Origin: Schizochytrium sp. TIO01
Lineage: Eukaryota; Protista; Bigyra: Labyrinthulomycetes
Direction of reading: 5' to 3'
DNA: 64,000 nucleotides
Assembly (NCBI GenBank): GCA_004764695.1
Contig: SMSO01000032.1
Location: 2,604,001-2,668,000 of the forward strand
Every line of letters begins with the position of its first letter. Positions within the stretch are counted from its first letter, which is position 1. Positions 19,896-28,144 of this stretch are shown piece by piece. The notes under the pieces are model-generated. The model ran no database searches, was not told where the DNA came from, and saw nothing but the letters and a program-made list of their open reading frames with translations. The position numbers were made by a program, and so were the translations under genes.

Positions 19896-20642
19896 CCTGC
19901 TAATGACGACCATTGACTTGATCTACTACCCTACCAGTCAGCTACCCTTAACTAAGTCACATTTGCTCCCTGTCTCATCGTTGGCTTCACGCTGATTTCA
20001 AGACGCCACAACGTATTGCGACCAGCGCGAAAATCAAATAAAACTCGGACACCTTCTGGCACACATCTTGAACTAGGCATCTGAGGGGCTTTGGACACCT
20101 CTTGTGCCCTTTTCGGAATAGGTTTCCACGTTGACCATGCCTCTTGAAGAACAACTGTGGCTAGGACTGCCTAGCCCCCAAGTAGAAGGCAATTTCTAGC
20201 TATCTATAACGTGTCATTGGGATGGAAAGCGAGTTAAAAGGCTATTCTTCGCAGCCATAGTTAGTAGTTTTACCTATGTCTCACGATATTGAATTTATTA
20301 TTATTGCTATTATTGCTGTTGTTGCTATTATGTTATTTATTTTTAATGAAACAAATGTTAGTTAAAAAGAAGAATGAGAAATTTTCTAAAAATTCAAATG
20401 ATGATTTGCACGAATGCAAACTCTGGGAGTAGGACCTTCTATGAGGATCAGTAGGAGTGGATAAGAAAGGAGTCTGTCTGAGTGGATTCATAGCGACCAT
20501 AGTAAAATGTGTGGAAGAAGAGGAAAGCGGCGCTGCAAAAGAGAACGTGAAGAGTGCAGCGCAGCGAAGAAGCAGCAAATCGGGATCGCGACCTGCATTG
20601 GCGTTGAGCCGTCCAGGTAGGAGGCGGGCAAAGGCAGGGAAA

Positions 20643-23600
20643 ATGCTAGCTTCAACGATGCGCAGGTCGCTATCACGCTACCAGGTGGGAGCCGCGGTAC
20701 TGGCGACGCAGAGATTGGCGGTGACGCCCACGACATTGCCCACGACGATGGTCCCGCAGAGATTAGCAGTGATCTCAGGGCGGCAAGACCTATTGCTAAT
20801 GCAGGTAAAGATGACAGGGATTTCACAGAAGTTTTCTACTACATCACGTAAACGTTCATTAAAGGCATCAAAGTTCAAAGCCAAATCAACAAAAAATTCA
20901 TCAAATGAACCTCAGAGCAAAAAGTCAAAGGAAAAGCTGAAGAAGGGAAAGGCAAAGCAGGAAAAGGAACAGCAGGAAAAGGCAGATCGCTTAAACAGAA
21001 AACTGAGCAAATTAAAAGTCAAAATAAAACCTCAAAATCACCCTAGCCCAGAGACTTCATTGAAATCAATTGAAGGAGAGATTGCCGAATTAGCAGAAAT
21101 GGACTCAAATGTCGTAAAGCCTGAGGCTCCATCAGCAAATGCTGCGATGAAAACTACCAAAGATAGGGATTCGGACCTCTGGGGAGAACCTGTGAATGAA
21201 TCAAAACTCGAAGCAAAATCTGTAGATGCCAAAACAAAAGCAGAAGTAGAAACCACCACGACAGAAGCTAATGCTCAAGCAAAAACAGACTCTAAGGTGA
21301 GATCGGAAGCAGATGTTAAAGTAGAAGACGCTAAAGCCAAGTCAGGAACCGAAGCAGATACTAGCGTGGAGGCAAAAGCAGAGCAAGAAGCTAGCGATAA
21401 AGCTAAAGCTAAAGCAGAGAAAAAAGCAAGACATGAAGCAGAACTAGAAGCGGCAAGACAAGCTAAAGCTAAAGCTAAAGCAGAGAATATAGCTCAGGCC
21501 AAAGCTAGAGTAGAGAAAAAAGCAAAAGCAGATGCAGAGAAAAAAGCAAAAGCAAAAGCAGATGCAGAGAAAAAGCAAAAGCAAAAGCAGAAGCAGAGAA
21601 AAAAGCAAAAGCAAAAGCAGAAGCAGACGCAGAGAAAAAAGCAAAAGCAAAAGCAGATGCAGCAGCAAGACAAGCTGACATTAAAGCTAGGGCAGAGAGG
21701 ATTGAAAAATTTGAAGCAGAAGAAGCGGCAAGAAAAGCTGAAGAAGAATTGTCAAAAGTGGGGAAAATATCTGAAACAACAACCTCTGGAAGTCAATCCG
21801 GTGCTATGCCTCCCAATGCATCAGATAGTAAAGCTGCGACCCTGAAATTTTCAACAACAGCGACGTTTCCAAGGTCCTCTAACGCTAACGCTTCGACCTC
21901 TCAATCTGATGGGGCAGAACACCAAGATATCACGATGCAGGATTATCTTCGCAAACATACATCTATGAATGGCGAAAAACTTATGACGGCCTTCCCAGCC
22001 AAAGATCATGTTTTACAAAATTGGGGGCCTTCTGGGCTGGGACCCGAGTCAAATCTCAAGAATGAATCTCAATCAAGATTCGAATCTACATTCCGTAACC
22101 TCATTGCAAGTATCCCTCTCAGCCCTGCGGAACAAGAAGACGTGAGCCAACTTTACCAGACATATGTTGATTCCACGAAGCGCAAGGATACTCTTATGGC
22201 TGAATACAAAAAGGCCTCAGCTGTTCTGGACCTCGCTTCTCAGCAATACATGGAGGCCTCTCGTTTTAAAAAACGTCTGGAATCTTACCTTGAAGAAAAT
22301 GACATGCTTCATCAGCTTGCGAAACACCAACTAGAAAAATTGTGTTCCCCTCGCACGGGTCGCTTCCAGAACCATCAGTCTTTCGCATATCCAACCTTAG
22401 AAGAGCGTGCAGCGCCGAACCCATCTCAGGATAGTCAGGAGGGTGATTCAACCAGTAATGGAGACAGCGCCGACAGGAAAGGCCCTAAGTCTATGTAAGT
22501 GATTCGCTGAAGCGCATTGTTGCAAATATTGTATACTTTTTCTTTCAATGTAATATAGATGAACTTCCTGATTATTCTCACGCAATTTTCTTCAATGTGT
22601 TATTTGTGTTTATATTCCACATCTATGACTATATACCTGAGCAGGTCGCGAGCAGAGGTTGAAGATTCGGAGAGTAACATCAAAGTCGGCGACAATTTTA
22701 ACATTCCGTTTCTTTCACAGAGTGCTAGCGACAACGGGATAGCATCTCCTAAAATTGCGTTCCCATTGGAGCGTGACACATTTCTATCCGAATATGCTGG
22801 ATTCAAAAATCCATTCTCAAATACAAGTGAAATGTCTTTCCATCGGATTCACATGATGTACCGGAAGCGCTGATTCTGGATCAAATGGTTTCTGCAATCC
22901 CGATTGACTTACAACCAGGTTCTCAGCTGAGATTATTTCGAAACCAACAAGAACCTGATTTGTCAATCGAAACACTTAAAGCTGAAAGAAGTCGTCTTGA
23001 AAGTGCTGCAGAGGTGGTGGGTGTACACTTCAAAAGAAGATTGGATACTCATGTTTTTCAGCGTGAAAATTCGGATGGTAAGAAAACCATAGATAAACTC
23101 ATTATACGAGATCTAATTAGGCCAATTTATCGAGAAGATCTTGCAGAGGTCATACCTGACATAGTGAAGTATGCCGACCTTTCATTCGAGCATATGGTTA
23201 ATCATCCCTTCGGCTCTTTAAGTGGATACTCTAATGAACGAGAAGAAAAAGTACAGAAAAATATTATCCGGCGAATGATCCGGGCTGGGTGGATTCCTTT
23301 CCTCGAAGAATACGCTGTTAAATTCCTCTCCGAGGAGATGACATTTAAAGCAAGACGCACTCGTCGTCCACAAGAAAGAGCTCATATGCTTAAGGCCTTC
23401 AACAGACTCCGAAATCACGTGGCTGGCGATCTTGTCTTTTTAAAACAAATGCCAGATAGTGACTATGACTCGCCGTCTTTTGTTGCCCTTGCTGTTGAAG
23501 TAAAAGCTTTGAATGACAGTGCAAGTGGAGGGTCGTCAAAATCACAGCTGAAGCTATTAGGCTTACAACGCTACCGATACGGAAATGCCATGAAAAAATT

Positions 23601-23781
23601 ACTAAACCCACTATACGTTCCATGTGTTTATGGCATTGGTGTTTATGGACTTCACTCTCTGCTTGATGATGAATACAATTTCTTTCTCTTGCCAGATGAG
23701 GATTTGCCGTCATGGTTTCTGCTTACTCTCCCTCCAGAGTGGCTTCGAGGCCACACGAGTATGCATATGAAGACAGATTAG
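20643..23781 (+). CDS. Putative single long mitochondria-targeted protein (K/A/E repeat stalk plus unknown C-terminal domain), interrupted by two -1 frame breaks and one intron
   Basis: ATG 20643 begins an R/S/L/A-rich, nearly acid-free presequence-like segment. An A5 run instead of A6 at 21570-21574 breaks an EKKAKAKA repeat. Intron GTAAGT(22495)..GCAG(22644) is in frame. A second break at about 22829-22870 joins the 22885-23781 ORF. Confidence 0.65.
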
Positions 23782-26368
23782 CATTTTGTGGATGCCTATT
23801 AGGACTTGTTGAAGATACTTCATATGAGATAAGTATGTAATTGGTTCATGGAAGAATATGAGTTTTTCAAAGTTGTCGTGGGACCCTTGAAAGTAGAATT
23901 GAAAAGAAAGAAAACGGGTGAGGCAATTCTGACATTTAAGAAAAGGCATTCAATCCCACACAAATAACATGCGCCTTCGCGTCTTTCATAGGTGGACGCG
24001 GAGCTTCCCAGCGACTTCTCAGAAAGTTCATCTCAGGACGAATTAACAATGAGATGCGAGAATTGCTATACTTCGACCCTTAGCCATTCTCCAATGATTG
24101 TTTATTATTTTATTTTTTAATTTAAAGTAGCGCAGATCGTGCTTGCATTTTTTGTTGGACTCATGACCCATGCTGCTGCGAAATACTCATTACTGTAGCC
24201 TCATCAAGGTAATGTTTTTTCTCAGCGCATGGCAAATTTGGAATACGCTTGGACAGCTCCTTGACGCTACTTAAAGCCGTATGTTGAACTTAAGAAAGAA
24301 AACAAGGTTTTTAAAGAAAGGTTGTAATATCGTTGCAGAGCAACTTAGCCACTGATCTGGTCAGGGTAATGGGATACCTGGCTTTAACATATCTAGCTTT
24401 CGGGATGGTAATAGACAGATGAAAACTGATAACAGTACATTTACAAAATCACAAATCACTCGATTAACTCCTTGTCACAACCTGAGTGTACCTCCATAAG
24501 AAATCAGAATGAATTAAAAACGCAACTCGAATCTATAGCATAAGGACAGCTTCTATTCCTATAAAAACAATGGTTTTTAGCAGTAATGTTAGAGTACCCA
24601 GTGTATTTGCGTGGGCATTTGATGGGTGCCGCTGTAACACTTTCACTCGCTCAAGCTTGGCCTCCAGGCGCCCTTCAAGTTAGCTGGCTGTTTCATTCCT
24701 GCGAGGCTGATGAGTTCAACAATTTTGAAAAACATGCTCAATGTATGTTATCCTTTTCGTTGTCTTTCTTTTTTAGGACGTGGCTTTGGGCAAAACTTGT
24801 TTATAAAAAAGGAAAAGCGACAATGACCAAACGTCAAATTAAAGGACACATTTTAGTTCCAAATGAAAGGTGTGCACCGGATATGGAAACACTATCTAGT
24901 CATCTCAAAGGTAGCAGTGGACATGCATTTGATGCTTATCTATTTAGAACAGCCGCTTCAAGCGATTTCTTTCTGTTGGGTTTCTAAATAAGCCTCATAG
25001 GCCACAGAGGAATGAAGAAGATGCAGAAGCAGAATCAGAAGAAGAAGGCATAGAAGAGCGAGACTGGCATCTTTAGGTTCTTCGTTTTTTCAAAGAAAGA
25101 ATGCTCTTGACGTCCCGTCTTATAATTACAAAATTCTAGAGTAGAAAAATAAAAATGTTTTACACGTGCCTCCAACTCCCCTTCATTTTGACATGTCCCT
25201 AGTACAACTACATCTCGGACTCTCCACCTATTTCAGAAGCTGCTTGAGGAAGTCGTAAGTTGAATTGATCGCCATGACGGCAATCCTTTGTTAATTTTTG
25301 TCTGAAGGTGCCTTTGGTACCGTGTGCACAAGCGGGAAATCAATGCATGATGAACATAATAGGTACTATTCAGTAACTCCTAATTGCACATAAGTCCTGC
25401 AAGCTTTCGTTTTAAATTTAAATTTAATTTTTTAATTTTAAATTATATATATCATATTATATAGGCCCTCTATGTAGGCCTTTAAGTAAAAACTAAAAAA
25501 ATCAAGAAAACAATTGAAAACAAAAAATAAATTATTCTAAAAAATACAGAGTAATTATTCACGTTTTTTGAACTTCATCAAGTGGACTCCAACATATGAT
25601 AAATAGATAGTTTGTGTCTATTCTTCGGAGTCCTTTGTCAATTGCGCGACCGAGCTTTGCTAGGTTGGATAGTCACGAGCACACGGTTTTTAAAGCGTGG
25701 ACAGCGACCTTCTTTCGTAGGTAACTGACTCGCTAGTTAGTTGGCTTAACCGGGTTCATCAACAGGGTCCGATTCAGGATCATCACTAGGTTTGGATCGT
25801 TTCCATTTCTCTCTAGACTAGTCAGTGCGCACTTCTCACGCGCACACCTGAGGCTGGCGCATCGCCAACACCTGCTGGCCCTGTCCTAGCATTGTGAAAA
25901 ACTGCTCAAGCAACACAAAAAGAGGGGGCGCCAGAGCACCTTGCGAGAAGCTTCAGTTTCGTTCACTTCACAACCTTCGCAAAAGTATTTTTCTGCACGT
26001 GCTCTCTCTCGAGAGCCCGTCGAATACAAAAATACGAAATCAGCGCTAAGATTACTGGTAGCAAACCCTTGTAGGAGTACTTCTCTGGAGTTGATTGATT
26101 ATCGTCACTCACACTCTGTTTATGAAAAGAAAAAGTGACTTCTTCGCACATCATCTTCGAGGGAGGGCCAGCAGACAAGCAACAGCGGGCTGCTCGAAGG
26201 GTCGGAGTGCGTGCGCATTTTACTGACGAGTGGGTTTACAAGCACGGAGCGGGAGCTCGTTGAAAGCCGGGGTGAAGCGAGCGCTTGACTAATTGCAGAA
26301 GCCAGCAACAGAGAAGTGAACAGGTTCTTGGTGTTGTGGCTGGGTGTGTGCCCGCTCGGCTTGTCACG

Positions 26369-28144
26369 ATGCCTGCGCAGGATTTGACGAAGGCGAAGCC
26401 CGTCTTGATGGGCGAGTTGTATAAGCTAGCGACCAAGTCAAAGAGAAACTGGAAAAAACGATACGTAGTGCTCTATCCGGACTGCATCAAGTACTACAAA
26501 AAGCAGGGCGACGCAACTCCCCGAGGCGAGATTCCACTCACTGCAGAACATTACGTCTCAGATCTTAACAAGGATGCCAAGGGCAAAGAGTTCACATTCG
26601 TGGTTTCTGATTTCCTGACTTCCGTGCGCCTTGCTGCCGATGATGCCCAAACCTCTGATTTTTGGAAAATGGCCATTGCCAAAATCATCAGCAATCTCCA
26701 GGCAAAGGAGAACTGGTATCAAGTAGCAGCAGCCGTACGTGAGCGCTCGCAATCTGAGCGTATGCGCGACCAGGAGGAGCGATTGAAGGCTTATAAGCAG
26801 AGTGTTGGCGACACAACTCAGTTGACCCGAGAGGAGGAAGACATTCATATTGCCCACTTCCTGGCTGATGAGGCTAAAGCTGCTCTATCAAATGCAGAGC
26901 GCAATCTTCAAGACGCAGAGGAGCAGAATCTCCCCACAGACATCATTGAGAGCTTACGCCAAGAGTGTGTTGAAGCAGAAGCTCGCTACTCGAGAGCCCA
27001 GGATGCTGAACAGGAGGCAATTGCAGCCAATGAACAGAAAATCGAGGAGGAACACCTTGAAGCACAACGAATTGAGGATGAGCGGATCCGTGCCGAAGAG
27101 GAGGAGCTTGAACAGCAGCGTCAGCTTGAAGAGGCTCGAGAGAATGCGCAACGAGAGCAGGAGCGTCTGAAAGAAGCTGAGCGCGTTGCTAAAGAGAAGG
27201 CGCGTCGCGCACGAGAGCTCAAGGCGCGTCGCGATGCTGAAAAGCAGGCCAAGGCAGAAGCAGAGGCTGAGGCGGCACGTGCCAAGGCAGAAGCTGATGA
27301 GGCCAAGGCTCGGGCACGAGCCGAGGCCGAGGCCCATGCGCGTCTCGAGGCCCAAGCTCGTGCTGAGGCCCAAGCTCGCGCCAGGGCTGAGGCCCAAGCT
27401 AAAGCTCGTGTGGACGCCCAAGCTAAAGCTCAAGCTGCAGCTGAGGCGAGACGTGCTCAAGCTGAAGCAGATGCCGCGGCTAAAGCAGCAAAGCGTCTTT
27501 CAAGTCGTAGTACACGTAGCGGCGCTTCTGATTCTGCCGGTGCTTCAGAGAGTCTCTTTTCCCGCTTTACACGCCGTATCAGCGTGCGTAGCAGCAGACC
27601 CGAGGAGACCTCTGCAGCTGCTGATTCGGAGCAACAGCAAGGTACTCCGGCTGCTTCTGCTTCTGCCTCGGTTGCTGGTGCTGGTGCTGACCTTGCCTCC
27701 GCCGCTACACAAGCTCTGAGCTCTGCCCGCTCGGGAATTGCTGCGCGGCTTATGCAGTGGCAGGAGAAAATTGAGGGTTATCAGGAAAGCCAAAGTAAGA
27801 ACGTCTTCTCTGGCTCTTACGAGGAAGCCCCAAAGATTTCTCGCGATGATGAAAGCTATGGTCATGCAGTCCCAGGTAGTAAGAGTGAAGCTCGCGCCCT
27901 GGCAGCTGCTGCCTGGGTTGTGAAGGAGATGGACAAACTTTGTGCTGTCATTCGTGATAACGGACAGGTCGCTAGCGACGGTACCGTGACAATCACCTTT
28001 GGTGAATTGTTTATCATTTATCAGGATATTTCTGATTCTCTTGTTGGTATTCTCATGCGTGCCAAAAAGTACAAGCGTCTTACATACGAGGGAGACATGC
28101 TCTTCCAGGGATTACATGACAATGTGGTCATCACCCTGTTGTGA
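26369..28144 (+). CDS. PH domain + coiled coil + STARS/ABRA-type Costars domain protein
   Basis: PH: GELYKL..KRNWKKRYVVL...YYK...PRGEIPL...FWKMAI. C-terminus TFGELF..Y..ISD.LVGILMRAKK....YEGDMLFQG.HDNVVITLL is the Costars signature. First ATG at 26369. Confidence 0.92.
   Translation: MPAQDLTKAKPVLMGELYKLATKSKRNWKKRYVVLYPDCIKYYKKQGDATPRGEIPLTAEHYVSDLNKDAKGKEFTFVVSDFLTSVRLAADDAQTSDFWKMAIAKIISNLQAKENWYQVAAAVRERSQSERMRDQEERLKAYKQSVGDTTQLTREEEDIHIAHFLADEAKAALSNAERNLQDAEEQNLPTDIIESLRQECVEAEARYSRAQDAEQEAIAANEQKIEEEHLEAQRIEDERIRAEEEELEQQRQLEEARENAQREQERLKEAERVAKEKARRARELKARRDAEKQAKAEAEAEAARAKAEADEAKARARAEAEAHARLEAQARAEAQARARAEAQAKARVDAQAKAQAAAEARRAQAEADAAAKAAKRLSSRSTRSGASDSAGASESLFSRFTRRISVRSSRPEETSAAADSEQQQGTPAASASASVAGAGADLASAATQALSSARSGIAARLMQWQEKIEGYQESQSKNVFSGSYEEAPKISRDDESYGHAVPGSKSEARALAAAAWVVKEMDKLCAVIRDNGQVASDGTVTITFGELFIIYQDISDSLVGILMRAKKYKRLTYEGDMLFQGLHDNVVITLL

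Follow-up and report, generated by a model that had tools for sequence, protein, structure and literature searches.

Humans have two Costars genes, ABRA and ABRACL, and STARS/ABRA has been studied as a muscle stress-response protein. Some proteins link membranes to actin by carrying a lipid-binding domain together with a module that binds actin. ER/K single alpha-helices are known as spacers, as in myosin X. To our knowledge, the Costars module has not been recognized as the actin-binding end of such a linker.

The actin-binding regions of STARS have been mapped to residues 234-279 and 346-375, with ABD1 (193-295) as the higher-affinity actin site and ABD2 (294-375) as a folded domain (PMC4682817; PMC13364712 Supplementary Table 3). 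Residues 242-250 of human ABRA, VGNLKGRWQ, are a predicted short linear F-actin-binding motif (SFM) (PMC13364712 Supplementary Table 3). The ABRACL/Dictyostelium Costars proteins (~81 aa, PDB 2l2o) have the winged-helix Costars fold in common with ABRA and take part in regulating actin; for ABRACL, association with cofilin and a shift of the F/G-actin ratio have been described (PMC7922284).

Here we describe a gene from the labyrinthulomycete Schizochytrium sp. TIO01, located in the window (the whole stretch of DNA that was analyzed, 64,000 nucleotides). An earlier note on this DNA had read the gene product as an animal-type STARS/ABRA module fused to a PH domain through a charged, Ala-rich helical rod. 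The analyses below bear out the module type, the fusion, and the rod, and they place the gene outside the animal ABRA clade, so that the label "animal-type" does not apply.

Results

A complete gene for a four-part protein

The coding sequence is complete and lies in a single exon at 26369..28144 (+), with 591 codons followed by a stop codon (28142-28144). The reading frame is free of stops over 26285..28144 (+), its first ATG, at 26369, is preceded by in-frame stops, and the start is the same as in the homologues P0001 and P0006. The 591-aa product, in which the C-terminal sequence quoted in the earlier note is found exactly as quoted, consists of a PH domain (residues 12-107), a long helix (190-373), a linker (374-456), and an ABRA-type module (457-591).

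Across four other assemblies there are eight coding differences, seven of them synonymous and one a conservative replacement (V348A). A 24-nt indel among the assemblies keeps the reading frame; by comparison of reads and assemblies, the deletion, present in two other isolates (runs X4 and X9), was placed at 27383..27407 (+), in 18-nt/6-nt codon repeats of the Ala-rich helix, and tandem repeats are found at 27328-27378. Because seven of the eight coding differences are synonymous and the indel is in frame, we conclude that this is an intact gene under purifying selection. In the runs that were marked as possible RNA, the contigs at the locus (3.5-7.7 kb records) cross both intergenic flanks without joints, so these runs were read as DNA and not as evidence of expression.

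Assignment of the C-terminal module to the ABRA subtype

The last 76 residues of the protein (516-591; 27914..28141, +) form the Costars winged-helix core. This core matched Pfam PF14705 over profile positions 1-76/76 (E 1.8e-26, 92.5 bits vs. a cut-off of 24), and Foldseek returned 2l2o and 2krh at probability 1.00, with DNA-binding winged helices as weaker matches. When the two Costars structures were compared as references, the core scored 69.1 bits against ABRA (2krh) in a gapless alignment, whereas its alignment to ABRACL (2l2o), which carries two extra residues in the F-x-x-Y region, needed a 2-residue gap and scored 36.8 bits. In the reciprocal control, the small paralog L003, a separate ABRACL-type gene in the same genome, gave 79.1 bits to ABRACL (2l2o) and 30.8 bits to ABRA.

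ABRACL has neither other domains nor the block that lies upstream of the core in ABRA. In this protein that region comprises an N-terminal module helix (residues 457-477; 27737..27799, +), which carries I457-A-A-R-L-M-Q-W464-Q465 and was delimited from the AF2 module model (H4-30, pLDDT about 90) and from alignment to animal ABRA, and an ABD1-tail block (residues 478-515; 27800..27913, +) with N-V-F-S, S-Y-G, and G-S-K-S-E-A-R-A. An HMM made from 13 animal ABRA upstream blocks only matched residues 463-510 alone at 27.1 bits (E 1.5e-10 for one sequence), a significant match by itself, compared with 10.9 bits for the best of 2000 shuffles. Over the whole module, the alignment with vertebrate ABRA has 39 % identity across 147 residues (E 3e-32). 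From these sequence comparisons, the module is assigned to the ABRA/STARS subtype of Costars and not to ABRACL, upstream block included, as the earlier note had proposed.

The AF2 model of the module has a pLDDT of 91.4. The ABD1-tail block is ordered in it, in contrast to isolated animal ABD1, which has been reported to be unfolded (PMC4682817). Module residues Y50, G51, G56, and R62 are invariant across 54 sequences, and W464 is nearly invariant in the family. The SFM has conserved anchors at P1, P4, P8, and P9 on a helix; when the nine residues I-A-A-R-L-M-Q-W-Q are read against it, I at P1, W at P8, and Q at P9 agree, but P4 is R, with L at P5. The upstream block falls in a region mapped as actin-binding in STARS, and both mapped regions have counterparts here.

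The module thus has in common with vertebrate ABRA/STARS/MS1 the W-helix, N-x-F-S, Y-G, G-x-K-x-x-R-A, Y-x-x-I-S-D-x-x-V-G-I-L-M-R-A, and the terminal V-I-T-L-L. The two proteins differ in what precedes the module, which in ABRA is an N terminus of ~230 disordered residues and here is a PH domain and a long charged helix, and the AT-hook core G-R-P of Ms1 reads G-H-A in this protein. They differ also in their setting, since vertebrate ABRA is a muscle protein and the host here is a unicellular heterotroph.

The PH domain and the spacer

The PH domain is encoded at 26402..26707 (+). It matched Pfam PF00169 at residues 12-107 (E 3.4e-11, 44 bits vs. a cut-off of 25.1), and AF2 predicts seven strands and a C-terminal helix over residues 13-113 with pLDDT about 90. 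A K-Xn-(K/R)-X-R sequence in strands 1-2 is the signature of phosphoinositide-binding PH domains, and it is present here as K19 ... W28-K29-K30-R31-Y32-V33. The homologues P0006, P0013, P0001, P0108, P0032, and P0014 keep this basic signature; it is absent from the paralog L001, from P0007, and from the pelagophyte homologues, although L001 and the pelagophyte homologues retain the PH-like domain. The closest solved PH relatives are lipid binders (SWAP70/KIAA0640, PLEKHA4-7, cytohesins, and TAPP1), and the PH domain of myosin X is also near. These features suggest that the domain docks on acidic-lipid membranes by phosphoinositide-type binding. PH signatures are in general imperfect predictors of lipid binding.

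Two shorter helices (residues 128-145 and 154-185; 26750..26923, +) were predicted by AF2 between the PH domain and the rod, and the rod itself was modeled as one continuous helix of 184 residues (190-373; 26936..27487, +). The region is charged and Ala-rich, as the earlier note had described it (A 26 %, E 18 %, and R 12 % over residues 136-400). Within the helix, 46 % of residues are charged and 9 % are strong hydrophobics, hydrophobic residues take at most 3/10 of the heptad a/d positions, and there are 31 opposite-charge i/i+4 pairs, compared with 19 +/- 3.5 in shuffled sequences (maximum 30 in 2000 shuffles). By length, charge, i/i+4 excess, and lack of a hydrophobic seam, the sequence has the properties of an ER/K single alpha-helix, which would make it a stiff spacer with a length of about 27 nm. 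The final third of the helix is Ala-rich, unlike classical ER/K helices.

A classical heptad coiled coil was considered for the rod and set aside, because the composition and charge pattern of the rod favor a single helix. An Ala-rich helix of this kind might still pair as a coiled coil.

The helix is followed by a Ser/Ala-rich linker (residues 374-456; 27488..27736, +) that is predicted to be disordered (AF2 pLDDT about 30-35 over 375-448) and has A 27 % and S 19 % over residues 401-462.

PH-Costars proteins in this genome and in other protists

A homologous N-terminal domain was found in 17 of 152 proteins checked (150 listed cluster representatives and two more), and the Pfam PH profile matched 11 of 68 long Costars proteins. 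In the data surveyed, no other multidomain context of the module was as common as PH+Costars. Of the eight Costars genes in this genome, four are PH-linked; besides the gene described here, these are its paralogs L001, L004/P0108, and L005. L004 is split over two ORFs (L013) in the genome, its exons were scanned separately, and the transcript product, P0108, has 1010 aa. The upstream block is retained only in part in L004 and L005.

The same order of parts is found in these paralogs and in proteins of other protists, among them P0001, P0006, P0013, and an 837-aa protein of the pelagophyte Aureoumbra lagunensis (A0A7S3NLY4). All have an N-terminal PH-like signature (...H-Y-V-S-D...S-D-F...Y-F-A-A...W-M-H...), a helical middle, and an extended Costars module. 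They differ from the protein described here in the middle region, which varies in length and sequence (proteins of 406-1010 aa), and, in the pelagophyte branch and L001, in having no basic lipid-binding signature. Because the architecture recurs in relatives and in paralogs, PH+Costars appears to be a selected combination. It is therefore not unique to this gene, being carried by 11-17 cluster representatives and four genes of this genome, but our literature search found no paper that names both "Costars domain" and "pleckstrin homology." We conclude that PH-helix-Costars is a recurrent but undescribed arrangement of an old eukaryotic module.

Distribution and phylogeny of the extended module

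The extended module (upstream block plus core) is not confined to animals: a chytrid fungus and pelagophyte algae have it, as do many environmental proteins. A tree of the module (180 rows and 140 columns, most rows without taxon names) placed all 13 named animals in a single clade of 73 rows (SH-aLRT 94). This gene lies outside that clade, which also holds a nematode, a mite, and an amphipod; elsewhere the tree was poorly resolved. The upstream block and the Y..ISD..VGILMRA form, which the earlier note had taken as metazoan features, were present in 59 of the 107 rows outside the animal clade.

A search of the ESM Atlas with the module matched only chordate ABRA clusters, and the full-length query gave no usable match among its clusters of 50 or more members. 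Because only clusters of at least 50 members were searched, the chordate-only result does not reflect the range of the family. A full-length profile (19-sequence alignment) run against a 5.8-billion-protein database was uninformative, with P0001 the sole match listed and the 8000 candidates that were considered taken up by coiled-coil words.

Since the extended module is widespread outside animals and the animal clade excludes this gene, these data support the view that the module predates animals. The earlier note had left open whether it predates animals or was transferred; the former is supported, and transfer from animals is not.

A predicted complex with the organism's own actin

In complex predictions with the organism's own actin, used as a monomer, the module scored 0.66, compared with 0.00 for the best of 3 controls. 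Of 78 solved complexes, 51 reached the score mark that the actin complex passes, as did 2 of 108 mismatched pairs; in the eukaryote benchmark, it was reached by 39 of 65 solved pairs without a like complex among older structures and by 2 of 126 unrelated pairs. The runs agreed in at least 86 % of their contacts, and the partner pLDDT was at least 77. Solved structures cover no more than the isolated Costars core, so the passing score is not recall of a like complex.

The predicted interface lies on actin subdomain 1 and the hydrophobic cleft (residues 142-149 and 329-350), and invariant family motifs contribute to it, with predicted contacts from the ABD1-tail block as well; the N-terminal W-helix is outside the interface with monomeric actin. 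Conservation is higher at the contact residues than in the remainder of the module (2.9 vs. 2.0 bits, p = 8e-6), and it is higher also when the upstream block is taken alone (p = 0.002); this enrichment is not independent proof, since conserved residues also serve the fold. Because monomeric actin was used and the interface covers the cleft to which many G-actin binders attach, F- and G-actin binding are not separable in this model. The prediction supports binding of the module to the organism's own actin.

Discussion

We consider it probable, with some reserve, that this gene encodes a membrane-tethered actin-binding protein of four parts that links or recruits actin filaments to a membrane or locally stabilizes them there. 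In the proposed mechanism, the N-terminal PH domain would dock on an acidic-lipid membrane through its phosphoinositide-type basic signature, the ~184-residue ER/K-like helix would be a stiff rod that keeps the module some 27 nm away, and a flexible linker of ~80 residues would join the helix to the C-terminal module. There, the ABD1 tail (W-helix, N-x-F-S, Y-G, and G-x-K-x-x-R-A) and the Costars winged helix (ABD2) would act as one composite unit that grips actin subdomain 1 and the hydrophobic cleft. Because the PH domain carries the basic signature and the controlled actin prediction passes, the membrane-to-actin linker suggested in the earlier note is the most economical reading. Such a protein would resemble known membrane-actin linkers and myosin X in that a spacer joins a phosphoinositide anchor to an end that binds actin, and it would differ from them in having no motor, FERM, or calponin-homology domain, its actin end being a Costars module.

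The protein could instead regulate actin dynamics, with the module binding monomers or acting through cofilin and the PH domain only localizing that activity. The hydrophobic cleft in the predicted interface is the usual site of G-actin binders, and the cofilin association and F/G-actin shift reported for ABRACL (PMC7922284) point the same way, but the module is of the ABRA subtype, with counterparts of both regions mapped as F-actin-binding, and the genome retains L003 as a separate ABRACL-type gene; we regard this reading as unlikely. It seems improbable to us that the protein is a cytosolic or cortical cross-linker, in which the long helix would dimerize as an Ala-rich coiled coil bearing two actin heads and the PH domain would bind a protein in place of a lipid. 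Many PH domains bind no lipid, L001 and the pelagophyte homologues keep theirs without the basic signature, and the rod could pair through Ala at a/d positions; nevertheless, the low content of strong hydrophobics, the few hydrophobic a/d positions, and the excess of i/i+4 salt-bridge pairs favor a single helix, and the gene's own subgroup keeps K19 and K29-x-R31. We give very little credence to a nuclear DNA-binding role of the kind suggested for animal Ms1/STARS, with its AT-hook and ABD2. Costars is a winged-helix fold with DNA-binding proteins among its weaker Foldseek matches, and micromolar DNA affinity has been reported for extended Ms1 ABD2, but ABD2 alone shows no clear DNA binding (PMC4682817), the AT-hook core is altered here, and the PH domain and long spacer argue for a membrane context.

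A separate possibility concerns origin, namely that horizontal transfer brought the module in from an animal and that it was joined to a PH domain afterward. The nearest large ESM Atlas clusters are chordate ABRA, and a published account places extended forms only in animals (PMC4682817). The Atlas, however, covers only clusters of 50 or more members, and the animal clade that gathers all 13 named animals, together with the nematode, mite, and amphipod, leaves this gene out. Identity is 48 % to the chytrid protein and 52-59 % to the gene's closest relatives, which are non-animal PH-bearing proteins, compared with 39 % to vertebrate ABRA; homologous PH+Costars proteins occur in pelagophytes, and the neighbors of the gene are ordinary housekeeping genes. 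Taken together, these observations make such a transfer highly improbable.

The earlier note also mentioned the RhoA-MRTF-SRF output of animal STARS/ABRA and, for a labyrinthulomycete host, a plausible role in the ectoplasmic net. Nothing found here ties this protein to the RhoA-MRTF-SRF output: a six-frame search of this genome gave no SRF-TF (PF00319) match, that is, no SRF-type MADS box, and one marginal RPEL match (26.8 bits), although the lack of a match is no proof of absence. A specific role in the ectoplasmic net is unsupported, though not disproved, as the same architecture is found in a pelagophyte alga, and the paper on the A. limacinum zoospore-to-vegetative (ectoplasmic-network) proteome contains none of the terms "Costars," "PF14705," and "ABRA."

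The full module occurs in this stramenopile protist, in pelagophytes, and in a chytrid, beside a separate ABRACL-type gene, and therefore the extended module is old, and so is the division between ABRA and ABRACL. More tentatively, we suggest as a possibility that the extended Costars unit (~135 residues) is an ancient composite actin-binding domain common to stramenopiles, fungi, and animals and probably as old as LECA. N-x-F-S, Y-G, G-x-K-x-x-R-A, and the winged helix might together hold actin in a clamp at its subdomain 1 and hydrophobic cleft, and thraustochytrids might have expanded the unit into a PH-tethered, spacer-bearing family that organizes membrane-associated actin, possibly including that of the ectoplasmic net. 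If true, this would be the first model in structural terms for the grip of STARS/ABRA on actin. The predicted interface yields residue-level hypotheses for actin binding by a family in which no complex has been solved, and these can be tested by mutation.

On the evidence presented here, ABRA is one vertebrate-lineage use of an old extended module, and the PH-helix-Costars layout would be an undescribed way of tethering that module to membranes. With eight Costars genes, compared with two in humans, this organism is a good one in which to learn the role of the Costars family.

Integrity of the window gene and its neighborhood

The open frame of the window gene runs unbroken from 26285 to 28144 on the forward strand, and in-frame stops precede the first ATG at 26369, from which a 591-residue protein is read. 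Pfam places a PH domain at residues 12-107 of this protein (E 3.4e-11); residues 516-591 match the Costars domain over its full length (E 1.8e-26), and the C-terminal sequence cited in the earlier note is present exactly so. The locus is covered at 95-100% identity by genome-like contigs from four other public runs. Because seven of the eight coding differences across these runs are synonymous (the other being V348A), a 24-nt deletion found in two of the four runs is in frame, and per-base variation is ∼3 times higher in the flanks than in the coding sequence, we conclude that the gene is real and under purifying selection. Ordinary eukaryotic genes surround it (pseudouridine synthase, a tubulin-tyrosine-ligase-like protein, a Myb protein, Rpb5, threonine synthase, and a cathepsin). 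Two upstream ORFs, 20457-21845 (+, 462 aa) and 22885-23781 (+, 298 aa), had no Pfam match at E ≤ 1e-5.

The C-terminal module is of the ABRA type

When the last 154 residues were compared with all PDB sequences, they gave a gapless 69.1-bit match to the C-terminal domain of ABRA (2krh), versus 36.8 bits and a 2-residue gap for ABRACL (2l2o). The comparison discriminates between the two types, because the small paralog L003 scores the other way round (79.1 bits for ABRACL versus 30.8 for ABRA). For a second test, an HMM was restricted to the alignment columns that precede the Costars core in 13 named animal proteins (ABRA or ABRA-like), and the window protein minus its core was scored against it. 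The upstream block, residues 463-510, scored 27.1 bits (E 1.5e-10, single sequence), compared with a top score of 10.9 bits among 2000 shuffles, bearing out the proposal that the module is of the ABRA/STARS type, upstream block included. The window gene is a member of the Costars family, ABRA subtype, and is built from known domains.

The upstream block falls within a part of STARS to which published work assigns actin binding. The mapped regions are residues 234-279 and 346-375 (PMC13364712 Suppl. Table 3); the higher-affinity F-actin site is ABD1 (193-295), and ABD2 (294-375) is the sole folded domain (PMC4682817). A short linear F-actin motif has been predicted at human ABRA 242-250, VGNLKGRWQ (PMC13364712 Suppl. 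Table 3). The aligned I-A-A-R-L-M-Q-W-Q of the window protein fits it in part, at P1, P8, and P9 but not at P4. DNA binding like that of Ms1 is unlikely, because the G-R-P of the Ms1 AT-hook reads G-H-A in the window protein.

The module outside animals

When 1.84 billion cluster representatives were searched exhaustively by HMMER, the 154-residue module matched 804 proteins at E ≤ 0.001, 355 of them at E ≤ 1e-10. Most of the best 150 of the 804 matches cover the query from near residue 17 onward, and so take in the extended module beyond the core. Named non-animal holders are a 189-aa protein of the chytrid Batrachochytrium salamandrivorans (48% identity over 138 residues, E 2e-40), an 837-aa protein of the pelagophyte Aureoumbra lagunensis that also has a homologous PH-like N terminus, and partial Aureococcus and Pelagophyceae proteins.

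The 180 module sequences (140 columns) were placed in a maximum-likelihood tree by quick search, and many parts of it are poorly resolved; few sequence clusters carry names, and most non-animal rows carry no taxon. A single branch (SH-aLRT 94) sets off a 73-row clade that holds all 13 named animal sequences as well as a named nematode, mite, and amphipod. The window protein lies outside this clade and groups loosely with environmental proteins that bear a PH domain, with its own paralogs, and with the chytrid protein. Scored by regular expression, both upstream motifs occur in 27 of the 73 rows of the animal clade and in 59 of the 107 others; with the chytrid and pelagophyte holders, this shows the label "animal-type" given to the module in the earlier note to be wrong. 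That note had left open whether the module predates animals or was transferred. A recent transfer from animals to a protist does not fit the tree placement or the identities, as the window protein is 39% identical to vertebrate ABRA versus 52-59% to its nearest non-animal proteins among the matches listed. The chytrid and pelagophyte holders, and an animal clade without the window protein, point to a module older than animals; an old module, probably inherited vertically, fits these sequence data.

Costars paralogs and the PH-Costars architecture

A six-frame search of the genome (64 Mb in 37 contigs), with architectures taken from Pfam scans and alignments, found eight Costars loci. Only the window gene (PH, long helix, and full extended module) and L001 (430 aa, with an alignable PH-like N terminus under the Pfam threshold) retain the complete upstream block. 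PH and Costars domains are also combined in L004/L013, a spliced gene corresponding to P0108 (1010 aa), and in L005/L012, a 1028-aa open frame (PH 132-229, Costars 952-1026). Costars is N-terminal in L006 (616 aa read; CCDC53-like segment and Pro-rich tail) and L007 (547 aa read; long tail), L008 (277 aa) combines it with LIM, and L003 (82 aa) is of the ABRACL type.

The C-terminal 221 residues of L004 have an identical match in P0108, a 1010-residue MMETSP0958 transcript product. The header of P0108 gives TAXON_ID 87120, the basidiomycete Rhizopogon burlinghamii, whose digits are transposed relative to 87102, Aurantiochytrium limacinum. MMETSP0958-0961 are A. limacinum; the identifier is probably a metadata error for 87102 and could mislead taxon assignment. 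The L004 match makes it likely that the host is a labyrinthulomycete, as the earlier note supposed. L005 (G000:C31:7103331-7106417; L012:532-3618, +) is convergent with an actin gene, one of five identical copies, at G000:C31:7107315-7108433 (-), ∼900 bp away. In L006 (L006:1381-3228, +; G000:C31, near 6790639), the Costars domain is followed by a match to the C-terminal end of the WASH-complex subunit CCDC53 (29.2 bits) and then by the long Pro-rich tail; Costars with CCDC53 also occurs in one representative of the public set. The L008 ORF (L008:1150-1980, -; G000:C33, near 1326991-1327143) pairs a divergent Costars domain (24.8 bits) with a C-terminal LIM domain (34.2 bits), a direct fusion that is curious because the LIM proteins ABLIM-1/2 are reported to raise the binding of animal STARS to F-actin by interaction (PMC4682817).

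Among 152 proteins checked (the best 150 of the 804 module matches and two others), 17 had significant similarity to the N-terminal 135 residues of the window protein. Pfam PH was found in 11 of 68 representatives of at least 300 aa, and RhoGAP in two, LIM in one, and SH3 in one of the same set. The two RhoGAP-bearing proteins are long ABRA-type environmental sequences (alignment A3; best E 3.1e-12), and they tie the module directly to Rho by a route other than the animal STARS pathway already known. The PH-Costars fusion is old within the lineage and recurrent rather than a single event, because the N-terminal domain common to these proteins has its own conserved signature (...H-Y-V-S-D...S-D-F...Y-F-A-A...W-M-H...). 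We found no literature pairing the Costars domain with pleckstrin homology, and no mention of Costars in the protist literature searched. The PH-single-helix-Costars architecture recurs in protists and is, as far as found, undescribed.

Predicted anatomy of the window protein

Modeled by AF2 from a 19-sequence alignment (mean pLDDT 74.7), the whole protein has a PH fold at residues 13-113 (pLDDT ∼90), shorter helices at 128-145 and 154-185, a single unbroken helix at 190-373, a disordered stretch at 375-448 (pLDDT ∼30), and then the C-terminal module; fusion of the module to a PH domain through a helical rod, as proposed earlier, is upheld. The long helix is 46% charged with 9% strong hydrophobics, at most 3 in 10 of its heptad a/d positions are hydrophobic, and it contains 31 opposite-charge i/i+4 pairs versus 19 ± 3.5 in 2000 shuffles (maximum 30). 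By pattern it would be an ER/K-type single α-helix, with a predicted span of ∼27 nm at 1.5 Å per residue. Its Ala-rich final third differs in length between isolates; an in-frame 24-nt length polymorphism lies at 27383-27407, in Ala/Gln/Arg codon repeats. Positions 27483-27503 and 27672-27689 match short high-depth contigs from elsewhere, and GC-rich Ala-codon words therefore recur in highly covered sequences.

The closest solved relatives of the PH domain are lipid-binding PH domains. Its K19 ... W28-K29-K30-R31-Y32 is the classical phosphoinositide-binding signature, which is kept in the nearest relatives and missing from L001 and the pelagophyte branch.

Predicted complex of the module with actin

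Modeled alone (54-sequence alignment, mean pLDDT 91.4), the module forms a helix at residues 451-477, an ordered loop bearing N-V-F-S and S-Y-G, and a long helix starting at G-S-K-S-E-A-R-A, followed by the winged helix. Foldseek against the PDB matched only the core (2l2o and 2krh) and found no solved structure of the upstream half or of an actin complex.

Actin of this organism (376 aa) is encoded by five identical copies (487.8 bits each; C36:63614, C31:7107315, C30:5328134, C30:1633472, and C8:31573), and the genome also holds several divergent actin-related genes. In a controlled complex test of this actin with the 144-residue module as partner, the score was 0.66 versus 0.00 for the top of three controls, with contact agreement of at least 86% between runs and partner pLDDT of at least 77; because monomeric actin was used, F- and G-actin binding are indistinguishable by this test. 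The mark is passed by 51 of 78 solved complexes and 2 of 108 mismatched pairs, and in a eukaryote benchmark by 39 of 65 solved pairs without a like complex in older structures and 2 of 126 unrelated pairs. The prediction supports binding of the module to the organism's own actin.

The predicted contacts on the module (N-V-F-S, S-Y-G-H-A-V, the K-S-E-A-R-A helix start, W-V-V, Y-Q-D-I-S-D-S-L-V-G, M-R, and D-M-L-F-Q) are the invariant motifs of the family. Contact residues average 2.9 bits per column versus 2.0 for other residues (p = 8e-6), and the enrichment holds within the upstream block alone (p = 0.002); conserved contact residues serve the fold too. On actin, the predicted contacts fall in subdomain 1 (17-32 and 82-101) and the hydrophobic cleft (142-149 and 329-350). 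The W-helix lies outside the predicted interface.

Cellular role

From the basic PH signature and the predicted complex with its own actin, we infer that the window protein likely acts as a membrane-to-actin linker, as had been suggested. A link to the ectoplasmic net is unsupported: the same architecture occurs in a pelagophyte alga, and Costars is named in neither the proteome paper on the A. limacinum ectoplasmic network nor the supplements searched. Nor can the animal Rho-MRTF-SRF output be assumed. The genome search gave no match to an SRF-type MADS box, which is not absence, and the sole RPEL-repeat match, at G000:C34:977669-977737 (-) in a 444-aa open frame, is marginal (26.8 bits, E 4.4e-4).

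The predicted interface provides a structural model, open to testing, for how the family may bind actin, and the window gene corrects the published picture of Costars family evolution.
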